Part shown: piece by piece, positions 2,126-51,172 of the stretch
Numbering within the stretch: the first letter of the stretch is position 1
Layout of the letters: every line of letters starts with the position of its first letter
NCBI RefSeq assembly: GCF_011386835.1
Contig: NC_088792.1
Location: 36,890,001 to 36,954,000, forward strand
Direction of reading: 5' to 3'
DNA: 64,000 nt
Source of the DNA: Chrysemys picta bellii
Lineage: Eukaryota
The notes under the pieces: generated by a model
Seen by the model: only the letters and a program-made list of their open reading frames with translations
Told to the model about the DNA's origin: nothing
The model's database searches: none
Program-made: the position numbers and the translations under genes

Positions 2126-2600
2126 GATGATGTGCAATTTAATCCTTTCCGAAACTGAAAATAATGGAGTTTTTAATTTGAATTTTGGTACTGTATTTTG
2201 GACCTGGGTCATGGTGAGCCGAGGTGCTTCTTTTGTCAAGTTAACTATTGTCCCAAATGGTCCTGTATGTAGGGTGGGAAGGAGAAAACCAAGTAATTAC
2301 CAGCTGAATGTATTCAGATCTTAAAAATATACATCTAGCTTTACATACTTAATTATACCAAAAAGCAATAAATTATTGTTCTCAGCCCCAAAACAGCTTT
2401 CAAAATTCAAAGACCCTTGAACACATCCTATTTTTTTTTTTTTTTTAATTTTCACATGTTTTGAGATCAAATTTCTCTTTTAATGAACTGGCACTCACTT
2501 CCTGATTGAGAACAAGGAGTGGGAATAAGGACTCCCCAAAATAACAATTCTGCTGCTGAATTCTCTTCTGCTGGTGGTGGTCAGACTCCCAGCTGTTACT

Positions 2601-3070
2601 CTCATAGTCGTAGAGTTTAAGGCTAGAAGGGAGGTAATCTAGTCTGACCTCCTTTATATCACTGACCAGCAATGCCACCCAGCACCTGCACACTAAACCC
2701 AACAACCAAAATATTGCAGCCCACAGGAAGTTAAACTGTTATGTGCCATGGGCAGAGAATAGGTGGGATCAAGATGCATCAGTGCCAGGGCATTAAATGA
2801 GAGAGACCCAGATAATACCAGCAAGTCACCTGCATGCTGTGATGCAGAGGAAGGTGAAGAAAACATCCCAAGGTTTCTCTGCCAATCTGACCTGGGGGAA
2901 ATTCCTTCACAATAGCACATATGGTGATTTTAAACGAAGGCCATGGGAGCAAGAACCAGTCAGCTAAGCACCTGCGAGAGAATGCTTGGTGCCACCTCAG
3001 AGCTTTAGAATGCACAGTCCAGTGTTCCAATACCAGCCGTTTCCATCTCTGATGCTTCAGAGGAAGGAGA
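2601..3070 (-). mobile_element. CR1 LINE 3' UTR fragment
   Basis: tcatag...agagtttaaggctagaaggga...atctagtctgacctcc is the reverse complement of a CR1 3' end. Confidence 0.75.
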
Positions 3071-3796
3071 CTTAACCAATGTATTCTTTGGTTGTTGTTT
3101 TTTATGTGAAACTGAGGAAAGAGATTTCCACTTCTCCAATGTGCTTTTACTAAGGCTGTAGCTACAGTAAGAGGGTCAAATCCAAGGAAAAAAATTTTGG
3201 GTTGTGGAAGAGGAGCACTAGGGTATCAGATGACCTGGAGGTTGTCAATGTCATTGAGAGAGGGCCAACAAAGAAGTCAATAATTTCAAACTGCAATGGT
3301 GTTTTTTTGTGATGCAGACATGTCCACGAGGAAGTGAACCTAATCTGTCCGTTTATTTCACAGACCTCTATTATTGGATCGTAACTTGTCTTCAGTCACT
3401 ACCCACCTGGTGCTGAAAGTCTGTGTCCCTTTACTAATTACCTGAACCATGTAGTTTCCCTCAAACTAATGGATCCATGTTGGTCTTCCATGGCATTTTA
3501 TCATCCTTTCAAACAATGAATTGTTTTGTAATCAAGTATGTTTAAATAGGAGTTGTATTTTGACAGTACTCTTGGGATGGTTGGTTAACTGAGGCTTTCA
3601 GCTTTTGAGTTGAAGCAAATATTTATTTCCCACAGAAGTTAATGTAAAGCTTTACCAGTAAACTCTTGGGGATGGGAGATGTTGCAGGTATTATGCTCAA
3701 GGAATGAGGAGATGAAGAGGATAGAAATGTATAGTATTAACTTTCTCAGTAAACCCTGTTTTATGGCATTGAGGAACGATGTTTAGAAAATACAAT

Positions 3797-4161
3797 TCAT
3801 AGAATATCAGGGTTGGAAGGGACCTCAGGAGGTCATCTAGTCCAACCCCCTGCTCAAAGCAGGACCAATTCCCAACTAAATCATCCCAGCCAGGGCTTTG
3901 TCAAGCCTGACCTTAAAAACCTCTAAGGAAGGAGATTCCACCACCTCCCTAGGTAACCCATTCCAGTGCTTCACCACCCTCCTAATGAAAAAGTTTTTCC
4001 TAATATCCAACCTAAACCTCCCCCACTGCAACTTGAGACCATTACTCCTTGTTCTGTCATCTGGTACCACTGAGAACTGTCTAGATCCATCCTCTTTGGC
4101 ACCCCCTTTCAGGTAGTTGAAAGCAGCTATCAAATCCCCCCTCATTCTTCTCTTCTGCAGA
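3797..4161 (-). mobile_element. CR1 LINE 3' end, relatively young
   Basis: ORF 3876..4145 ([14 protein letters not shown]...[10 protein letters not shown]...[18 protein letters not shown]) intact; 3' end ttctatga. Confidence 0.95.
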
Positions 4162-4649
4162 CAATTGCCGGCAGATAAATGTCCAATTTAAAGTGACATT
4201 TATTTGCAGTAAAAAAAAATTCCTTACACTGATGATAATTTAAATGAAATTTCTTGGGTTTAAGATTTTAAATATTTAAACAAGAATTTTCCCAGTATTC
4301 ACCATTGGAAGGAGAGAGGGTAGGTCAGTGTGTTGTTTTCATAGGATACTGTACATCAGTAATATGTTGGGGTTTTTTCATTTAAATGAACTCCCTTCAG
4401 CTGTATTCTTGGCACAAATGTGGTCTTGGCACAAATAAACTAAACAAAGATGCTGCAATATGAGTGACAAGCTGCATCCCTGTTTTAAAGAAGAACTGTC
4501 TGATATAGTGCTCCCCTGTTTATGCAGAATGGTGAAGGGCAAGAGCACAATTAAATGGATTAGTAAAAAAATGAAATATTAAGAAAATGCAACTGACTGG
4601 GGAGGGAAGAAGCCATGCCAATGGCTCAGTTCTCCAAGATGCTGATCAC

Positions 4650-4795
4650 GTGGGTACCTGATCAAGCAAAGCACTTAAACATGTCCTTAACTTAAAGTGT
4701 GCAGGTGGTCCCATTGAAATAATTCAGACTTTTCATTTGCTTAAAGTTAAGTATGTGCTCAAATGTGTCTGTGGATTGGGGCCAATGGGCGCAAG
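4650..4795. repeat. Old palindromic, MITE-like interspersed repeat
   Basis: arms gcacttaaacatgtccttaacttaaag / cttaaagttaagtatgtgctcaaatg form an imperfect hairpin. Confidence 0.45.
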
Positions 4796-5313
4796 TTCTC
4801 AGTATACAAAGTTTACCCTGATAATCTTTTAAATCACTTATCCCAGCATATTGTTTTAGTTGTTTCTGAAATGGAGCTGTGTGTTTTAATTAAAACTTGA
4901 CCACGTGTGGTGGCTGCAGGTAATAACCCTGGAAAGAAAAAGAAAAATTGAGTTTGTATTTTAGTTGTTCTAATGCTAAATGGCATAAAAATGTAGTGAA
5001 AATTGCAAAAATCAATGAACATCTTATGTTAATTATTTAGTGTAACATGAGTTGATAAAATATTTCTTATTTACTTAAAATAGGATGAAATAATTGTTTA
5101 TTATTAGAGATCCATTGTGCTAAGTGCTTTACAAATACAGTCTCTGTCCTGAAAAGTTTTGCATACAAATATACAAACAAAAACAGACCGAGGATGAGGG
5201 AGAGGGATAGAATTATACAGTGTTTTATGAGGTAGATTATTCTTACTCAATTTGTTAAAAACAGAGTTTTTCTTCTAAATAATGGCTGCATTTCCCTTTA
5301 TCTTATAAGTTAA

Positions 5314-5640
5314 TTCATTGCACCGCGACCCTCTTCTGACAAAAAAAAATTACTACATGACCCCAGGAGGGGGTACCGAAGCCTGAGACCACCTGTGCCC
5401 CACCACCCCATGTGTTTGTGGTGGGCGGGGGGAGGCAAAGCCCAAGGGCTTCAGCCCCAGACAGGGGGCCTGGAACCTGAGCCACACTGCCCAGGGTTGA
5501 AATACTTGGGCTTCAGTCCTGCGTGGTCAGGCTCACACTTCGACCCTGGGCTCCAGCAAGTCTAAGTCGGCCCTGGCAACCCCATTAAAATGAGGTTGTG
5601 ACCCACTTTGGAGTCCCAACCCATAGTTTGAGAACCGCTG
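5314..5640. mobile_element. hAT-type MITE missing one TIR; same family as 63640..63971, opposite orientation
   Basis: ends gagaaccgctg; shares aattactacatgaccccaggag and gcccaagggcttcagcccc with the 63.6-kb copy. Confidence 0.8.
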
Positions 5641-7668
5641 AAGTAGAGCAACAGATTTACAGGATAAGTATAATTATAGTTCTATAGCATGCTTTCATAG
5701 AACTCCATCAGATTTGTATGGGAAGTAGAAATGTATACAAAGTTGCAATGCAGTGCTTTTTGATAATTAAAAAGAGAAACTTTGTGGGTGCTGAGCTTTC
5801 TAAACACTCAATGCATTCCTAAGTGTTTGGCAGCTCTTGTCATTAGGGACTTAAATGGGGTAGTGCTTTTAAAAAGTCAAAAGGTCGCTACCGTAATTTA
5901 AGCAAAACCATAGTGGCTCATTTTTCGTAAACATATCTTTCAGTGCAACAGGTTTGACAGAGTATATTAGTCTTTCGCATATTAAACCACTAAGAGGAAC
6001 TAAAAGACTGAAAAGAATATGCAAATTTTTCCAATATATTTTCAACTGTATGCAAATAGGTATGAGTGGCAGAAAATGTATATTAATGCATGTAAGATTC
6101 TGATTTAATTCTTGAACCTGTTTTTAAAATTGGTCATTGACTGGCTGATTAAAACAGTTCAAAAATTCTCAGACTGAATAATAGTTTTACCAGTATCTCA
6201 TCATTCATTTCCTCAGCTTATAGTATTATCGGGACAGTAATAAAATGCAGTGCTTTCACTTCCTTAAATGTTGCAATATTTCTGTGCAGGCCCGTAACTG
6301 GGTTTATAAAAGGAAGAATTTAATTAATACAAATGTGGAAACTCCTCACTCTGTTTTTTTTTTCCCCACTGAAAATGAAGCTTGGACTGAATTAGCTCAT
6401 TAGGGAATTCTGCCAATCCCTCAGAGCCCTTTTTAACCAACTCTCCTTTCCTCACAATAGTGAGCCTGCTCTGCACAGATATTAAGAAGCTGTGATCATA
6501 AATACATACTTGTTTTTTAAAATATATTATATACACAAAGGTATCAGTCCTATTTTGAGCATCATTAGACAATTAGTTATCTTCTGAAGCATATTGTTAA
6601 TAGTTCGACATCCAGGTTTGTCAGTACATAATTATTACATTTCCAGTCATTTGTAATTTGAGGCATCTCCAGATTTTATCAGTTTAGATCTTAGCATTTC
6701 CCCCCCCCCCCCCCCCCCAAGTTAATGAAGCATAGTTGGTAGTGGACATATTTTACAAAGATGCAAACTCCAGCAGAGTTTATAACTTAGGTCTTATGGA
6801 AAACGTTAACATTAGCTTAGTCCAGGAGGAGAACTATTTTGTTTTTTTACCTTACAAACTAACAAAATTCTCCCTGGTCTTAATTATTTTGCATGGTATT
6901 AGTCTTATTTCATTTGCATGTTTCTGGGTGTCCCTCTTCCTCCCCATTTCTTTTTAAATTTGATTGGGAGCCTGTCAGGATCATAAATAGCCACTTATAT
7001 AAAAGTGTAGAAATAGAGTTTTTATATTCTGCTATAGGGGAAAAAATATAGATTTAAAAAAACTATCAGGGTGCAGCCTGTAATGGAAACACAGCTTGCT
7101 CCTGTTTTGTGAGTGGTTTCATTTTTTTCACCCATCACATGAGGAGGATGTTTCTGCGGAATCATCCCTCTAATTTCAGACCTATAGTGTGAAAGCAGCT
7201 GCAATCAGCTGACAGCTTGTGGTTCTGTTCAGATATATGTGGGGAAGGGGTGCACTGTTTCAAATGCATAATGAAGATCTCATTTCGTCATCTGGAAGCA
7301 GGGATGGTAGCAGCTCAGGGGAAATGACAGTAATGTTGCTCTAGTGGAAGGGAAGCCTTGTTACACATAACCAGAGCACTCTGCATGCAGCAGTAAAGAT
7401 GCACCAAGACAAAATGGCACAAATGTATTTCGCGTTCCGGAACGGGTAGAGAATAAATGCAAGAAGCAGGTAGACGCAGATGGACATGTCCGCAAAGAAC
7501 CTGAAGTTATTTTTTTATACTCCACTGCCCTTAACCTCTGTTGGTACCTTCCAGAGAAATTGGTATTAGATGTATTTTTAGCTTGCTGTATCCAGAATCA
7601 GTATGACAACATAATTCTGCCTTTACATCTATAAGCAGCTTTTACTATGTTTTCCTATTTTCTGCCAG

Positions 7669-9222: not shown

Positions 9223-11155
9223 GCATATTCCCAAGATGCCTACCTGAAAGGCAATGAAGCCTATAGTGGAAATGCTCACAACATTCCTGAACCACCACCA
9301 ATATGTTATCCTCGACTAACATCCACACCTTCTGTCATGGCACAGTCTGTGGACATACCGCCTTCTGACTCTTCATTGGGCAAGCAGCAAGCCAGTAGAC
9401 CAGTACGGACATTGATGCAGCCAGACAGGGCCTATAGAATGGAAATACAAGTGCCTCCATCGCCAACAGATATTGCAAAATCAAATACAGCTGTGTGTGT
9501 TTGCAATGAAACCATAAGGACTGTTGTTGTGCCTTCTGAGAAGGCTGTAGATTTGCCATCCTGTAGAACTAATCATGCCGGTCCATCACACAGGACGGAG
9601 GAAGTGAGGTATGGCTTAAGGGATCAAACCACTTTAAAAACAAAAGCATGGACCACATCACCACCATCTTCAGCGTCCACTGCCATTGTACTTCCTCAGA
9701 CTCCAATTACCAGGCCAGTAGATCCCACTGGAATGATAAGTAAATCGGGAAATTATGGAGGACATCCAGAAGGGATCTCAAGCACTAGACCTCCTGCAGG
9801 TTCTCCCCCAACCTCTACTAATCACTATACTTCTCCAAACTCCCACCAGCACATAGACTGGAAAAACTACAAAACCTACAAAGAGTACATTGATAACAGA
9901 CGTTTGCACATGTATGGCTGCCGAACAATACAGGAAAGATTGGATAGTTTGAGAGCGGCCTCTCAGAACTCAACTGATTATGTGGTGCCAAATCGCACTA
10001 TTTCACAGGTACGACGCAGAAGCACCTCTCATGATAGGGTTCCACAGTCTGTTCAGATCCGACAACGGAGCGTGTCCCAGGAAAGACTTGAAGATCCAGT
10101 GCTGATGAAAGAGTGGCCAAGAAGTGCTTCACAGGATGCATTAACTTCGCCATCTATTAGTTCCAGGAACCACAGAACTCAGTCGTGGGATTACCTTGGC
10201 AAGCAGGGTGAAACAGAAAATTTTTGTGCTGAGAATCTTGTTACAGATTCAAATGGAGACAGAAAAAAGACTTACAAGTGGACTGGATTTACTGAGCAAG
10301 ATGATCGGCGAGGTATTTATGAAAGATCTAGACAGCATGCATTTCACATGTCCCTTCGAGGTCCACATTTTTCAGTGGCTCCAGGTGCTTATAATTCAGA
10401 CAGGCGAAAAAGCAATAGAGCCTCTATGTCTGCTTCTCAGCTCCAGAAAGTTCCATCAGATGTAAAAACACTGCAGCCTACTAGGGATTTTCAAATAGCT
10501 GGTGGAGTTTCAAAGCCTACAACCACCTCACAAGAGAGAGCATCTCTTGCGACAGACAGAAGTTCTAAAAGTAACTTTTTGAGGACCTCTGTTCCCTATG
10601 CAGAAAAATCTTCACTTCCCATTAACCAGAGTCTGGATATTGTGGCCAAAGACCAAAAAGCAGTAAATCACTTGCATCCGAGTGGTCTGTTAAATCATCA
10701 ATCAAAAAACCGAGGAGAAAATGCCCCAGACCACAAAACAGAAATTGGCAGGAGCATCCAACCCCCCACTTCGACTGCAGCTTCTGCCAAACTTGTCCAA
10801 CAGATGAGCGAGAGCTCAGCTACCTCTGATAACTTAGATGTTTCCATTAGACAAAAGATTCAAGATTTTGAAAAGGAAAATACACAAGAGCCTGAAATTC
10901 AGCAGCCAGATGTTCTGGAAAATGACACAGACGCCGTTGTCTTGCGGGAAAAATCTCCGTCTGGTCACCAGACTCCACAGCCTTTGAGACACCAGTCCTA
11001 CATCCTAGCAGTAAATGACCAGGAGGCTGTCTCAGACACTACCTGTTGGTTACCTAATGATGCACGTAGAGAGGTGCATATAAAAAGGATTGAAGAAAGG
11101 AAAGCATCAGGTTCCAGCCCACCTGGTGATTCCTTGGCATCCATTCCATTTATAG
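9223..11155 (+). CDS. ARHGAP21: ARHGAP21 large internal exon (1933 nt; AYSQDA...SLASIPFI)
   Basis: ccacag|GCATAT; ATAG|gtgagc; contains ORF 9337..11187; phase 0/1. Confidence 0.97.
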
Positions 11156-12483
11156 GTGAGCTAAACAGATTAATTGTATCAGTGTAATATATATAAAATA
11201 TGTTGTTTTACTACTTTGTCTCTAATTTAGAGTTTAAATCAAGAGAATAGCATTCAGGTGGCTAACTAGCATTCAATTAAACCTTCCCTCTGTGTGGATC
11301 TTTTCCAACACCACTTATCCAAATAGACATTAGGATGGTAAACACTGGAGTATTTTTCAGAAGAGGAAAAATATTTCATTCGTTGTATGCTGTATAGTAT
11401 GTCTAGGAAAACCCATTGTGATTCAAAATGTTTCTCTAGAGATTTCTTCAATTCCTTACACAACTCCCAAAATTATATATTCTCTTCTGGTTTTTACTCC
11501 ATGATCTGATCTGATCTTATTTGCAGCGGAGCATTGTGCATGTGATTGTTTCTTATTCATTAGAAATAATTCAGCAGAATCAGTGTTTATAACGCTTTTC
11601 AAAACACTGTTAAATATAAGGTTACTGAGTGATGCAAGGGAGTATCAGATGTATTGTCATGCAGCCCTCTTGACCATGCGTCCATGGCAACCATTTTGTC
11701 TAGAACTAATAGATATGCTTCCCAACCAAGTTGGGAGTCACTTCATGATATCTAACATGAAATAGTGAAGAGAATTTTTGTGTTTTGGAGGGCCAAGGTC
11801 TCTCAAAGAATACATATTATTTTCATGTTTAGCTTTAGCTGTCCTAACAGAGCAATTTTCTCTATGAATGGACAGGTGGCTTTCATATTGTCAAATTCAT
11901 ATAGAAAGTATATAAGCTGTTGGTACATCCTCACCATTAATTATTGCACAACCCCACATTTCTTCTTAGTGCATTAGCATAAGACAATAAGGCATATAAC
12001 CAATAAACATTTATTTTGTGCAGGTGTAGTATATTTTGTATCTCAAAAGCTTAGTGCTCTTCTACTATTAAAGGTCTTAGTTTGTCACATATGCAAGTTT
12101 TACATGAAGTCTGACTTGGATATATTAAGAGGTTCTGTATGGTTTCATACATAGATTACATATATCTTGTTTGAGTGGTTCTCAATTCTCTAACCGCATG
12201 CAATTTAAATGTCATATTGTAACAGGCAAATAATGCCACATTATGATAAGATTGTGTAAAAAGGGTTGGGTTTAATTTAAACAAAAAAGATTTCCCATGA
12301 ACTTGGGACAAATGTGGCTTACTTCCAGATTTTAAACAGGTATAAAAATTAAAGTCCAAAGGAGCTTTAAATTATGACAGAGGTATTTCATTTTGGTAAT
12401 GGCCCTGCAAGTTAGAAGAAAGAGTTGAAAATTTTTTTTGTCTGCTGTCTCATAACACCATGTACTGTGATCCTGTGAGGTTT

Positions 12484-12860
12484 TCATAAGCTATGCAGCT
12501 GTCTCTTGGATGTGAGACCTCCAAAGAACATGAGGAAGTGATGCTGTTGATTCAGTAGGAATACACGCCCTTGAGTCACCTAATTATTAAGCATGATACT
12601 AGGAATCCATATGTTGCTTTAAATGAAGGCTTTTGGAGACTATTTTATACTGAGGCCCCAGCTACTTGTGTTCATTAAAGATCAAATGGCACTTTTTAAA
12701 AGAGTAGAGTTACTAATAATGTGACTTGAATAATTAACATTCTGTCAACACTTGAAGTTGCAGGTGGGTACAGTATTTTTCACTTTGGGTGTTAAACCAT
12801 TGTGTGGTGGTGCTACATTTGGCCCCAATCGTGACTGTATTTCAATGGATGAAGAGTTCC
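12484..12860 (+). mobile_element. Ancient 5S-derived Deu-domain SINE (AmnSINE-like), degenerate
   Basis: 5S-like head (cataagctatgcag...cttggatgtgagacctcc), then gtgatgctgttgattcagtagg and cttgtgttcattaaagatcaaatggcacttttt; family call from recall. Confidence 0.6.
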
Positions 12861-25825: not shown

Positions 25826-27148
25826 ATGATGTCAGATTGGAGGGAGGTCTCAAGTGTGGTTCCACAGGGTGCTGTTCTGGCTGGGTGGTGTTCAACATAG
25901 TTACTAATGCACTGAATGTAGGAATACAGAGCATATTGATCAAATTTGCAGATGACACAAAGCTAGGGGGTATTGCAAACACTTTGGAGGTTAGAGCTAA
26001 AATTCAAAGGGATCTTGATAAATTGGAGAACTGAGCTATAGACAACAAAATGAAATTCAACAAAGACAAATGTAAGGTGCTACCCTTGGGAAAAAAAACC
26101 CAAATGCACAAATACAGAATGGGGGATAACTGGTTTGGCAACAGCATTGCTGAAAAGGATCTGGGAGTTGTGGTGGATCACAACCTCAGCATGAGTCGTC
26201 AATGCAATGCTGTTGCCAAAAAAAAAGGGGGGGGGAATCAATTTTTAGGTTGCATTAACAGAGGCATAGCACACAAGTCACAGGAGGTGATAGTACTGCT
26301 CTACTCTGTGGTGGTTAGGCCTCCGCTGGGGTACAGTGTCCAATTTTGGTCACCGCTTTATAAAAAGGATGTAGAGAAAGTGGATCTAGAAGCAAGCGAC
26401 AAAAATGATCAAAGGGATGGAATGCAAACGATATGAGCAAAGGCTGAAGAAATTGGGTATCTTTTGTTTGGAAAAGAGGAGATTAAGAGGGGACATGATA
26501 GCAGTCTTCAAATACTTGAAAGGCTGTCATAAGAAAGATGGAGAAAAATTATTCTCTTGCCACAGAGGGCAGAACAAGAACCATTGGGTTCAAACTACAG
26601 CATGGTAGGTTTAGATTAAACCTCACGAAAAACTTTCTAACTGTAAGAACAGTAGGACAATGGAACAGACTGCCTAGGGAGGTTGTGGAAGCGCCTTCAC
26701 TGGAAGTTTTCAAAAAGAGGCTGGGTAGACATCTGTCTTGGATGGTTTAGATCAGGGGTCCCCAACACAGTGCCCACGGGTGCCATGGTGCCCGCTGGGG
26801 CATCTAAGTGCGCCCGCGTACTGGCCGGCAGACGAGCATCTGCCGAAATGCCGCCGAGAAGCAGCAGCATCCGGAGGTGTCGCTGCCGATTTTCGGAGGC
26901 TAAGCCTCTGGATGACGGTGCTTGTTGGCGGCATTTTGGCGGCAATGCCTATTGACGTTGCTGCTTGTCGGCGGCATTTCGGTGGATGCTCGTTCGCCAT
27001 CACGGTCCTCCGTGGCTCGTCATCTGGCGCCCGCCAGACAAAAAAGGTTGGGGACCACTGGTTTAGATGCATCAAATTCTGCACCTTGGCAGGGGGTTAA
27101 TTTATATGACCTTTGCGATCCCTTCTAACCCTATGGTTCTATGATTCT
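25826..27148 (+). mobile_element. CR1 LINE 3' part, interrupted by a hAT MITE
   Basis: KFADDTKLGG, MKFNKDKCKVL, WNRLPREVVEAPSLEVFK; 3' end ggttctatgattct. Confidence 0.93.
26753..27060. mobile_element. hAT MITE nested in CR1
   Basis: TIR caggggtccccaac / gttggggaccactg; perfect 8-bp TSD GTTTAGAT. Confidence 0.95.
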
Positions 27149-27473
27149 CCTGTACTGTTTTTTCACTGTGTGCATAGAGGCATGTAGATGCATTAACGGC
27201 ACCACAAAAATCTCCCAAGAATGTGTCACTACTTTGTGTGAAGTGACATACAGAAATACTACAGTGGTAAAATAAATGCCAACAGTATTGTGTTTAGTAC
27301 TGCTAGTAACAAGCAGAATGCAGCCAGATATCTTAGCCCAGTGGAGAGGACAGGTTTATATCGTGTGCCCTGTATTTATATAACTGCAAAATTTCCATGA
27401 ATTCCGAAAAACTAGGTAAACAAATGGTAACTTTGTATTTGGAAAAATTTCCTTTCTCCATTTTCTTCACATA

Positions 27474-27672
27474 CACCTCTACCTCGATATAACGCTGTCC
27501 TCGGGAGCCAAAAAATCTTACCGCATTATAGGTGAAACCGCATTATATCGAACTTGCTTTGATCCTTCGGAGTGCGCAGTCCCGCCCCCCTCCCCCCCCC
27601 CCAGAGCACTGCTTTACCGCGTTATATCAGAATTCGTGTTATATCAGGTCGCGTCATATTGGGGTAGAGGTG
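27474..27672. mobile_element. Tc1/mariner-type MITE
   Basis: TIR cacctctacctcgatataacgc / gcgtcatattggggtagaggtg; TA on both sides. Confidence 0.85.
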
Positions 27673-28593
27673 TATTTTGCCCTTTCTGCCACTATCCCAT
27701 CTATTGACTTCATCAGCCACAGCTTTATAAATTAGCCATAGTAGAAACAGTGCAAGAGTTCTGCTGTGAACGTCTTGGGCTAAATTAGTAATACTTACAT
27801 TGGCGGCTGAGTGGATCAGCTGATTGCTTCACACACTGCACTTCCAAATATTACAGATGTTTCAATTTTTTTAAAATTCTGTTGCTTAGTTTTAGTTTAA
27901 GGTTTATTTTTATAAAATAGCTTAAAATTATTTCTCGTGGTAGTACTCCATCGCCCCTTGAATTGGGTGTTTGAGCCTTTTAAGGTTAGTAAAAAAGTAA
28001 ATCTTAAAGAAAGTTGAATTAGTATGAAAATCAGTGAAGTATGAGTCATTGCTGCCATCTCAGGAGTTTAGTGGCTTGTGAAGTGTTTCTCTTCAACCTA
28101 GTTCATGGGTTAAATAGCACATACTGTGGGAAGTCATGTAGCATCCCGAGTATCAAGTAACAACCTAGTATTTGTAGCTTGAGTGGATTTATTCCATATG
28201 CCAGCATTTCTAGCCTGTCGTAGCAGGGGTTATTGCATTCTGACTGAAGTCTGTGTCCTTTTAAAAAAAAAAAAAAAAAAAGAGCTGCAAGCTGAGCACT
28301 CCCAATTTACATGTTAAGAACCAGTTAAAGGAAGCAGTGCTGGAATTGTCATTTCAAAGTGTGTATCCTTTGGTCCAAATTAGAGTATGGGATTTTTCAT
28401 GATTTGCTGTTGGAAAGGATGATCAAAGCACAGTGAAAAAGAAGAAAATAGGACCACGAGGGACTGCTGTAGTTCTGAAAATGAAAATGTAATTATTAGG
28501 TTTCTCCCACCCCCAAACTATAATAGAGAAGTGATTTATTAATGTCTCTAATTGCTGCTGTGTGAAATTAGTTAGATAAATATTACTTTTAAG

Positions 28594-29657
28594 CAGGGTG
28601 AATTTGATTTAAATCCTGATTTTAAATCACAATTTAAATCACTAGTCAGAAAGACTCCATTTAATCATGGTTTTCTCAATAAAAGTGCATTCTTGTTGGT
28701 TGTTATAACCTTAGTACATATTTTTCACAGCTCAAAAATAGATGTAGGTTTCATTTTTAGAAGGTACATTCAGAAAATGAATGATTGGTTATTTCATTTA
28801 TCAAAGATAATTGAAGCAGGTATTTATGAAGTCATTGGGAGGTGAACTATCTCCAATTCAACAGGTTAATTATTAATATTTGGAGGATTTTCTTGCCATG
28901 CTGTATTAGGAGGAGAATATCACCAGACAGACATTAAAATTGTTTTATTTAACTAAAACAACAATGTTAAGTATTCTGGATTTTTATCTTCAACAGCAAA
29001 CATATAATATTTTAACAAAACAAACATATGTCCCTCGCTTCTCACATTTATCTCCAGACTTCTCCTTGTCCAGATCTATTCCAAAAATCTTCTATTTATT
29101 GAACTTATTTTACATTTTGCACTTTTAGAGAGAGGTAAGGGATTGACACTGTGTACACAAATTTGCAGAGGGACAATAGGGTTGAGGTCTGTTATTCTCA
29201 CCTCTATATGTTGTTTGTTTATTTAAAAACATTTTTGCTGTTAACAAGCACGTTGTCTTCTGGAGAGACACATCCACAGTTTGAGAACTGCAAAATTAAG
29301 CATCTCTGATGGTATCTTCTAGACTGAGCACTGAGTCCCATTGGGTAGGTAGAAAGATTAACCTAAATAATCTATACAGAAGCCCCTGGAACCCCATAAA
29401 ATTGGGTCCCTAATCCATGAACTATTGGAACTCATTTACAAAACTTTTCTTAAACATTACATGAATATATTGTCTCCTACTATCGAATTAGAATTTATAA
29501 TCCCTATTCCATGATGAGATATCTTTGAGCTATAATGTATCTTAATTAAAACTATCTTTAGATAGGTCTCTTCCTCAAAAAGCATTTTATCAAAAAAATC
29601 TGATTTAAATAAAAAAAAATCTATTTTTTTTTAAATAATTGATTTTTATCCACCCTG
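28594..29657. mobile_element. Non-autonomous hAT element (about 1.06 kb)
   Basis: ends cagggtgaa / tccaccctg with gatttaaat subterminal motifs; perfect 8-bp TSD CTTTTAAG. Confidence 0.9.
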
Positions 29658-30950
29658 CTTTTAAGGAAAATATCTTTTACTTTGAAATGTGTTGTAATTA
29701 CAGAGTTTTAGATTGCATTGGCAAGTTCTGCTGCTGACTTTTACATTTAGTATAACAGAACAGCTTTTTATAATGGACGTTAGTCTTTTAGTTCAAGACA
29801 TTGCTTCACTTTTCATCTAACGTACCATTGGTGACATAGAGCAGAGGGCTGTATAAAATTACTAAACTTGTAATAGATTTTTCTGCCATTTTAAAAATGT
29901 AAGTGTGCAACCAGAATGTGATGGTACAAGGTGACAGTTTTGAACAGAACTGTTAGTGACTATTTGAAAAGCACAATACCGTGCATGCAGTTGTGTTCAC
30001 ACAAAGCAAAGAATAAACCTCTGTTTGTGAATGTTCACTGATTTCAATAGGCTTTTCAGAAGCTCTGCATATTAAAATTCACGGCACTTAGAATACATAC
30101 ATATTAATTATAGCAGTACAGTTCAGCAACATGCTCATGATCTGGTTCTCTCCATCTTTCTCCTGTACCTCTGTACTGGAATAAGTATTTTCCTTGTATT
30201 CTTAGTGTATTTTAGGAGATGTTTATATGCTGTCGCTTTGAAAAATCTGTTGTTGTTTTTCCAACACTTCATCTTGTAAGAAGTACATAAAAATCATGGA
30301 AATGCTTAAGCTTTTTTGGATTACTGCACAATGACACTCGTTGCTTTTGAGACTGTGAGGTGTTGGACATGTACAGACTGCAATCCTTTATATGAGCAAT
30401 TAGTGGAAGATATAATTGGTAGGTAGTAGTCTTTTAAATAGGGGTTTGGCTATCTTTTAAGTATGTTGCCATTTCAAACCTTGCTGTTTTGAGCTTTTTT
30501 GTAATTTTTGTTTGAAGATTAATAACTATTTGAGGTTTTATGCATAAATTGTAATGCAGTGAATATTGTATTCCATTTCGCTTGCATTTAGCCTTCTTAT
30601 GCATCAGCAACTGAATTTAGAAGTATAGTTTTCTGACCAACATCATGCTGTTTAAACAGCATACCATTTAAACCTAGAAATTCTATTGTGACAGTTGTAT
30701 GAACATTCTTTATTCTTATCCCAAATATGTAACTAACATTAGTATGTCGATAGGATATGGCACCAACTTTCCTTAAGAAAAATGTATGTTTTAATAATGT
30801 GAATTAACTGGATCCTTAATGTTTGAAAGGCTGGATGTTTAAGATATTAGTTTCTGATATTCTAATGAAGAGGCAAGTTCAGCCTGCTGTTTAGTCTGAG
30901 CTCTTTACTAAAGCGTTTAACATGCTAATATATTGCATATTGCCTTGTAG

Positions 30951-31109
30951 ATGATCCAAGTAGCCCTAGTATTGACCATGACATTGCACACATTCCTGCT
31001 TCTGCTGTTATTTCTGCATCTGCTGCTCAAGCTCCCACTATAACAACGGTTCCTCCCAGTCCCACATCTTCAGTTCCTTTAATTCGACGTCAGCTATCCC
31101 ATGACCATG
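30951..31109 (+). CDS. ARHGAP21: ARHGAP21 exon ([11 protein letters not shown]...RRQLSHDH)
   Basis: ccttgtag|ATGATC; CATG|gtaagt; 159 nt, phase 1/1. Confidence 0.95.
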
Positions 31110-31268
31110 GTAAGTTTGTTTGTTTTGTTTTGTTTTTAAACAAAACTTTTTCTTTTAAAATTTGTTTTCTTTCATATGACAGCTTATGATGTTTTATTGC
31201 TTCAAATAGTCAAAACATAAAATGTGATTGCAGCTGATTCGTGTTTGATAATTTTGATTGACTTGCAG

Positions 31269-31371
31269 AATCTATCAGGCCTAGTATATTGGATGGTCAA
31301 TCTCCTGCAAAAACTGAGAGATCCAAGTCTTATGATGAGGGATTGGATGACTATAAAGAAGAAGGAAAATT
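31269..31371 (+). CDS. ARHGAP21: ARHGAP21 exon (ESIRPS...[20 protein letters not shown])
   Basis: ttgcag|AATCT; AATT|gtaagt; 103 nt, phase 1/2. Confidence 0.95.
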
Positions 31372-31476: not shown

Positions 31477-31513
31477 GTCTATTAAACATGTATCTAGTTT
31501 AAAGGGGATCAAG
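31477..31513 (+). CDS. ARHGAP21: ARHGAP21 37-nt exon (LSIKHVSSLKGIK)
   Basis: caacag|GTCTATT; CAAG|gttagt; phase 2/0; restores frame. Confidence 0.92.
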
Positions 31514-32149
31514 GTTAGTAACATATTTAACAATATTACAAGAGTTGTGGATATTAGTGTTTGCTAATATGAGTTATATGAATTTTAAATATTGTGCTGG
31601 GTCACATATGTGAAATCATGGCAATTTGTTTTTGTTACCTATTTAATCATTCTAAAATGACTTTTTGATGCCAGGTTTAGGAAAAAATATAAGTCACCAT
31701 ATTGTGACAAGTTAGTAAATGTGAACTGTTCTCCAATTTCTCTACTATTTTTTTCAAGGTACTTTAAAATGCCATTAGACTTGTTTTATAGCTGAACAAA
31801 AGGCTTTGGTTTTCATTTTCTGCAGCATCTTACATCTGAGCTATAGTATATGATGCACTCAAAGACAAAAATATCAAAATAAATTAAAGGTGGAATGTCA
31901 CAAGAATTACGTAGGCTTGAATAGTGTGTGACTTCACAGTTAATCATTTTGTACTAATGGAATAGTAGAAAGCGTCTTACCCTGATAAGTATTTCCTTGC
32001 ACCACACACTGAGGAAACCTTCACATAGAGATGTGGGCCTGAGGGGTGGGGGGAGGAAGGGGGATGAGGGGGAAAATTACCTAAATATAGACCTCTACTG
32101 AGAAATCTATTTAGAGTACCTCTTGATATTCTGACTTATTTTTCTTTAG

Positions 32150-32275
32150 GTCCCAGACAGCCAAAAATCTTCAGAAGACTCTGGATCCAGAAAAGATTCC
32201 TCATCAGAGGTCTTTGGCGATGCCTCCAAGGAAGGATGGCTCTATTTTCGACAGCTTGTCTCAGACAAGGGAAAG
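32150..32275 (+). CDS. ARHGAP21: ARHGAP21 exon, start of PH domain ([10 protein letters not shown]...[16 protein letters not shown])
   Basis: tctttag|GTCCCA; AAG|gtattg; 126 nt. Confidence 0.95.
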
Positions 32276-33057: not shown

Positions 33058-33402
<345 letters not shown>

Positions 33403-51040: not shown

Positions 51041-51172
51041 NNNNNNNNNNNNNNNNNNNNNNNNNNNNNNNNNNNNNNNNNNNNNNNNNNNNNNNNNNNN
51101 NNNNNNNNNNNNNNNNNNNNNNNNNNNNNNNNNNNNNNNNNNNNNNNNNNNNNNNNNNNNNNNNNNNNNNNN
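51041..51172. other. Assembly gap (132 N)
   Basis: run of N in the sequence. Confidence 1.

Follow-up and report, generated by a model that had tools for sequence, protein, structure and literature searches.

A probable ancient alternative first coding exon within a 19.8-kb intron of turtle ARHGAP21

Analysis of a 64,000-nt stretch of the Chrysemys picta bellii genome (contig NC_088792.1, positions 36,890,001 to 36,954,000, forward strand; here called the window, to whose first letter all coordinates refer unless another contig is named) identified a 29-codon open reading frame, at 30331–30418, which is very likely a real and ancient alternative first coding exon of ARHGAP21. Judging from the species in which a homologue was recovered, the exon would date at least to the common ancestor of ray-finned fishes and tetrapods. 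The sequence features of the exon are in place, its conservation is of the coding type, and gene models of a frog and of teleosts use it as CDS start. Isoforms arising from alternative promoters are a known kind, and this one is already present in a few automated records. The well-studied protein ARHGAP21 acts as a GAP for Cdc42 and RhoA at the Golgi and at cell junctions; as far as we know, functional studies have used the long PDZ-containing form.

The ARHGAP21 gene lies on the + strand of the window, where an intron of 19.8 kb separates a large exon from the exon starting at 30951. The relevant features are the following:

9223–11155 (+), large ARHGAP21 exon of about 644 codons, ending with ...SIPFI plus one base, in phase 1, with the donor at 11156
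30331–30418 (+), coding portion of the putative alternative first exon, made up of 29 codons from the ATG on plus one base that begins a split Asp codon
30419–30424 (+), donor GTAGGT, phase 1, crossed by unspliced RNA contigs
30419–30950 (+), intron that the short isoform would remove, 532 nt, the final ~178 nt being conserved with tinamou
30951–31109 (+), following exon, constitutive (DDPSSP...LSHDH), with both ends in phase 1, completing the Asp codon
31268–33394 (+), downstream exons 31268–31371, 31477–31511 (35 nt), 32148–32273 and 33107–33394, spliced in RNA contigs

The large exon is, from residue 11 of its open frame onwards, 96% identical to a protein of the turtle Platysternon (P0154) and 77–79% identical to bird and tuatara proteins. 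Its canonical junction with the next exon (11155>30951) is documented by one RNA contig joined to 30951, whose loose end consists of the final 30 bases of the large exon (the loose end at 30948 being exactly window 11123–11152). The PH domain is encoded by exon 33107–33394. As for splicing phase, exon 30951 can accept either the large exon or the alternative first exon.

A previous reading made from the sequence alone (hereafter the sequence-only reading) had pointed to an ATG at 30331 with an A at -3, opening 29 codons that end at a phase-1 donor suited to exon 30951, and all of these features were correct on re-reading: the ATG occupies 30331–30333, the 3' end reads ...ATA ATT G|GTAGGT at 30418/30419 and the phase is the one required by 30951, so that the frame would continue straight into that exon. 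The in-frame TAA reported upstream (30307–30309) was confirmed as well. The further claims, that no AG occurs between this stop and the ATG and that the exon cannot thus be an in-frame cassette, need to be corrected, as an AG at 30309–30310 overlaps the last A of the TAA and an acceptor at this position would give a frame-preserving cassette of 108 nt (30311–30418). From the sequence, usage of this cassette is rated unlikely because the tract preceding the AG is purine-rich.

Similarity searches, in which either single exons or database proteins served as queries, detected in tinamou, gecko and frog a 29-codon ORF with ATG, frame and phase-1 GT donor that precedes the counterpart of exon 30951, as well as a shorter version in paddlefish:

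L005:30583–30669, tinamou (Eudromia elegans), orthologous ORF separated by about 600 nt from the downstream orthologous exon
L002:5929–6015, gecko (Gekko kuhli), orthologous ORF
L004:4001–4087, frog (Ranitomeya imitator), orthologous ORF corresponding to the annotated CDS start, with length and donor as in turtle
L008:6486–6548, paddlefish (Polyodon spathula), 21-codon version in the same intron, with donor G|GTGGGT in phase 1

The position is syntenic and on the same strand as the gene, between the large exon and the exon beginning with D(E/D)PxSP (turtle 30331 within 11155–30951, tinamou 30583 within 20464–31275, paddlefish 6486 within 2419–7639). Residues identical to the turtle peptide were 22/29 in tinamou, where an in-frame stop is found 8 codons upstream as in turtle, and 13/21 in paddlefish. 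In an alignment of seven species (A2), identity to the turtle peptide was 76% for tinamou, 72% for gecko, 67% for paddlefish and 52% for frog (15/29, ungapped), and M1, C11, C14, C17, Y21 and E26 were invariant. The donor at the orthologous position is GTATGT in the other three tetrapods, and paddlefish and tarpon have GTGGGT; in the gene models of tarpon and Muraenolepis, the pattern C-x2-C-x-D-C-x3-Y occurs just before the same phase-1 junction. The sequence-only reading would have been put in doubt by a lack of conservation of ATG, frame and donor in other amniotes, and all three are kept in tinamou and gecko.

The type of conservation is that of a coding sequence. Nei-Gojobori dN/dS ranged from 0.13 to 0.44 in six out of six tetrapod pairs, with changes at third positions predominating, and the 87 nt of the exon contain no indels in the four tetrapods, while the 160 nt just upstream are rich in them. 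The 8 codons 5' of the ATG are poorly conserved, and on the other side conservation ends ~12–35 nt past the donor. In frog the exon has diverged so far that blastn finds no match for it in the window; it does match as protein, and a DNA profile built from the three sauropsid sequences recovered it at E 9e-8.

Public gene models were then considered. Searching the 52-aa next exon against 1.84 billion representative proteins retrieved 36 proteins, most of the short ones being ORFs that read through the intron, and further relatives were obtained by word-index protein searches (127 and 120 candidates scored in two of them). Four short models are of relevance:

CAJ0934835.1, frog Ranitomeya imitator, 1157 aa, the first 29 residues of which align without gaps to the turtle peptide
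KAL8165056.1, gecko Gekko kuhli, 1162 aa, beginning with MEAII at an internal ATG, five residues ahead of the junction
KAG7487443.1, tarpon Megalops atlanticus, 1092 aa, with a different N-terminus having C-x2-C-x-D-C-x2-L-Y before the same junction
KAJ3595354.1, Muraenolepis orangiensis, 1128 aa, with the same core as tarpon

Pfam assigned to all four models a PH and a RhoGAP domain, the PDZ being absent. The short PH-RhoGAP isoform without PDZ put forward in the sequence-only reading has thus a counterpart in the frog and teleost models starting here, which carry only these two domains, and its remark that the isoform may already be annotated in some species proved right for the same models. 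They share with the turtle exon a homologous N-terminal exon, the Cys3/Tyr/Glu core and the phase-1 splice to the same exon; on the other hand, they are automated predictions, unnamed and unstudied, and the teleost N-termini are longer than that of turtle and resemble it only in the core. The gecko model is probably truncated at its N-terminus, because at the gecko locus the frame stays open upstream of the annotated ATG up to the conserved ATG, 24 codons earlier, which would restore 29 codons. No amniote model with the full N-terminus was present among the 127 and 120 candidates scored in the two protein searches, thus annotation pipelines rarely detect the exon. Indeed, the exon is intact in the genomes of Eudromia elegans and Polyodon spathula and absent from their long ARHGAP21 models (P0208 and P0043). 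Being missing from most annotations (tinamou, paddlefish and the full amniote models seen), it offers a concrete gene-model correction.

In Sphaerodactylus townsendi a different short peptide (...GDLGVF), unlike the turtle exon, precedes the same downstream exon, as N-terminus in one model and inserted behind the PDZ region in the other (P0129 / P0128), and may represent a mis-prediction or another alternative exon. A literature search found no paper describing this ARHGAP21 exon. Two unannotated, CAGE-supported Arhgap21 start sites were reported in rat by Iso-Seq, at positions that cannot be read from the text (PMC9892061). The Ranitomeya imitator genome preprint describes a MAKER annotation with transcript evidence (10.1101/706671), which may be the source of CAJ0934835.1.

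Upstream of the exon, three further features were recognized:

29919–30330 (+), conserved non-coding block, putative internal promoter and/or 5' UTR, with blastn matches to tinamou and gecko
30286–30292 (+), TATA-like CATAAAA, read from the sequence
30302–30334 (+), short out-of-frame upstream ORF that stops on the main ATG

By blastn the upstream block matched tinamou over 520 nt (75% identity) and gecko over 531 nt (68%). When the whole 19.8-kb intron was compared between turtle and tinamou only three blocks aligned, the best being 29919–30431; a second conserved non-coding block of the intron, at 16093–16645, is 68% identical to tinamou over 562 nt. Within the upstream block, conservation is strongest at ~29940–30165, a non-coding portion lying 170–390 nt 5' of the ATG that fits a putative promoter or 5' UTR, and is weak at ~30170–30300. 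The block is CpG-poor (CpG observed/expected 0.2–0.3) and is not a known RNA, since an Rfam search of 29600–31000 gave zero matches. The TATA-like CATAAAA noticed in the sequence-only reading does exist at 30286–30292, but is poorly conserved in the three-species alignment (columns ~400–412); a TATTAAAA-like element near 30070–30080, within the conserved block, is better kept. For the upstream ORF, a ATGCTTAAG start is common to turtle and tinamou (L005 ~30554–30584), at an equal distance of 29 nt from the main ATG, and the stop falls on or just past the main ATG in both. If located inside the 5' UTR, this ORF might damp translation, which would be relevant only for a transcript starting 5' of it. 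Just 5' of the conserved block, RNA contig depths at 29000–29595 reach hundreds to thousands, with many short contigs and several fixed differences, and this segment looks like a high-copy transcribed repeat.

Expression was sought in four contig sets of this species, derived from four studies (X1, X5, X19 and X20), whose RNA nature was judged from spliced ARHGAP21 contigs. The 30418>30951 joint, indicated by the sequence-only reading as a check of its proposal, was not present in the contigs of X1, X5, X19 and X20, although the canonical and four downstream junctions were seen in them. Joints 31371>31477 and 31511>32148 were found in three of the four runs, on both sides of the 35-nt exon 31477–31511, which is apparently a constitutive ARHGAP21 micro-exon, and joint 32273>33107 was found in all four. 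Contigs crossing the candidate donor unspliced and unbroken were observed in X1 (29827–30534, depth 7.3) and X5 (30261–30761, depth 4.6), the exon depths for comparison being 47.7 and 20.2. The unspliced depth over 29.8–31.0 kb is ~2 times that of the downstream introns, a ratio that is uninterpretable because it is contig-based; likewise, contigs reveal no transcription starts. The missing joint is weak evidence against use of the exon in those samples and does not show its absence, as rare variants are lost from contigs and the tissues of origin are unspecified.

Three other explanations were weighed against that of an alternative first coding exon. The sequence could be coding without being a first exon, namely a second exon behind an upstream non-coding exon or the 108-nt cassette 30311–30418, and this we regard as unlikely. 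The AG at 30309–30310 would create the in-frame cassette in turtle and has the same 20-nt spacing in tinamou, while an acceptor-like CAG right before the ATG in gecko would suit an upstream non-coding exon. Nevertheless, the position of the ATG is the same in the four tetrapods and an in-frame ATG exists in every species, and neither the purine-rich tract before the turtle AG nor the poor conservation of the 8 codons preceding the ATG is in favour of an acceptor upstream. As to the cassette, in gecko an entry from the large exon at the CAG meets an immediate stop, and no joint of either kind was seen in the four RNA contig sets. Somewhat less probable still is that the conserved region acts in regulation without coding, for example as an intronic enhancer or a splicing regulator, and that its ORF is incidental, the frog and fish models being predictor artefacts. 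It would account for the block being most conserved in a non-coding part, 170–390 nt upstream, and it agrees with the lack of spliced RNA in this species and with most annotation pipelines skipping the exon. It is at odds with the third-position excess and a dN/dS below 0.45 in every pair, with a segment of exactly 87 nt free of indels in four tetrapods next to an indel-rich flank of 160 nt and with the maintenance of ATG and GT; moreover, protein identity persists without a blastn DNA match in frog, paddlefish and two teleosts.

A functionless chance combination of ORF and donor in an AT-rich intron has some ground in the turtle sequence taken by itself. Six ATG-ORFs in the same 19.8-kb intron reach 29 codons or more and finish at a phase-1 donor whose score, by a simple donor matrix, equals or exceeds that of the candidate, block shuffles of the intron yield a mean of 1.1 such combinations, with at least one in 70% of the shuffles, and the candidate donor, of only moderate score, ranks below most real ARHGAP21 donors. 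The ORF-plus-donor pattern alone is not beyond chance, whereas its conservation across species is, and the case for the exon therefore rests on conservation. A chance origin is refuted by the orthologous ORFs in tetrapods, the paddlefish version and the seven-species alignment; the recurrence of C-x2-C-x-D-C-x3-Y before the same junction in fishes also speaks against it, and we give it almost no weight.

Under the favoured interpretation, that of an alternative first coding exon, transcription would start at an internal, CpG-poor promoter downstream of the large exon, within the 19.8-kb intron, and the first exon would be spliced in phase 1 from 30418 to 30951, its expression in this turtle being presumed. 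The predicted product, of ~1150 aa, would be devoid of the PDZ and of the whole 644-codon exon and would retain the PH/ARF-binding region, the RhoGAP domain and the C-terminus, preceded by a new 29-residue N-terminus with a Cys core of presumptive functional role. Compared with the canonical long ARHGAP21 (PDZ-PH-RhoGAP, ~1900–2000 aa), every exon from 30951 on would be in common; the long form splices the large exon, ending at 11155, to exon 30951, which the short form would not do, losing the PDZ and ~800 N-terminal residues in exchange for 29 new ones.

The invariant core of this N-terminus is C-x2-C-x2-C-x3-Y-x4-E. Pfam searches with the peptides gave no match with E below 0.09, hence no family, and a profile search against PDB returned non-significant matches (E 0.4–1.2) to zinc-binding regions of Teashirt-3 (2DMI) and Ski (1MR1). 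The AlphaFold model of the frog N-terminus, from a 7-row alignment, predicted with low confidence (mean pLDDT 56) a helix at residues 12–26.

Clusters of S-acylated cysteines occur near the termini of several proteins, e.g. SNAP-25, GAP-43 and PSD-95. The ARHGAP21 exon recalls them in having closely spaced Cys near the N-terminus with hydrophobic neighbours, and ARHGAP21 itself acts at Golgi and plasma membranes; it departs from typical acylation sites in that its spacing, Tyr and Glu are invariant in all species and its surroundings are acidic. Similarity to a zinc knuckle, or to the first half of a C2H2 zinc finger, is found in the C-x2-C, in an aromatic residue placed four positions beyond the later Cys and in the predicted helix, but only three invariant ligands are available where four metal ligands are expected. 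Because the spacing is strict and Tyr and Glu are invariant, we consider, from sequence comparison, that simple S-acylation is slightly less likely than a structured or metal-binding motif, which may be shared with a partner.

The exon was also searched for in placental mammals. The whole orthologous intron of mole-rat (L007 40458–50142, with one 20-N gap) contained no homologue by blastn, tblastn, nhmmer or protein profile, and none was detected in whale (contig L006) in the 2.3 kb upstream of the exon, beyond which the contig has gaps. On the basis of these two species, a loss of the exon in placental mammals is possible. Such a loss would explain why work on human and mouse ARHGAP21 has missed the module; to our knowledge, the protein has been studied mainly in these two species.

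We tentatively propose, with rather less confidence than for the exon itself, that the 29 residues form an undescribed targeting or metal-binding module at least ~430 million years old, which in fishes, amphibians and sauropsids would define a separate PDZ-less isoform driven by a conserved intronic promoter of its own, and which would have been lost in placental mammals. If so, ARHGAP21 would have a second isoform, without the PDZ scaffold, opening with a strictly conserved three-Cys motif and older than the split between ray-finned fishes and tetrapods, acting as a separately regulated and differently targeted GAP. Should the mammalian absence hold, it would represent a clean lineage-specific loss of an ancient isoform, and its study would then call for chicken, Xenopus and zebrafish.

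Other elements were noted elsewhere in the window. A run of 132 N (gap or masked) occupies 51041–51172 and CR1 fragments are present. Within an ARHGAP21 intron, the segment 36000–40300 is a GC-rich insert (52–57% GC) with long ORFs, one of which weakly matches the phage-integrase N-terminal SAM-like domain; this insert looks like a DIRS-type tyrosine-recombinase retroelement.
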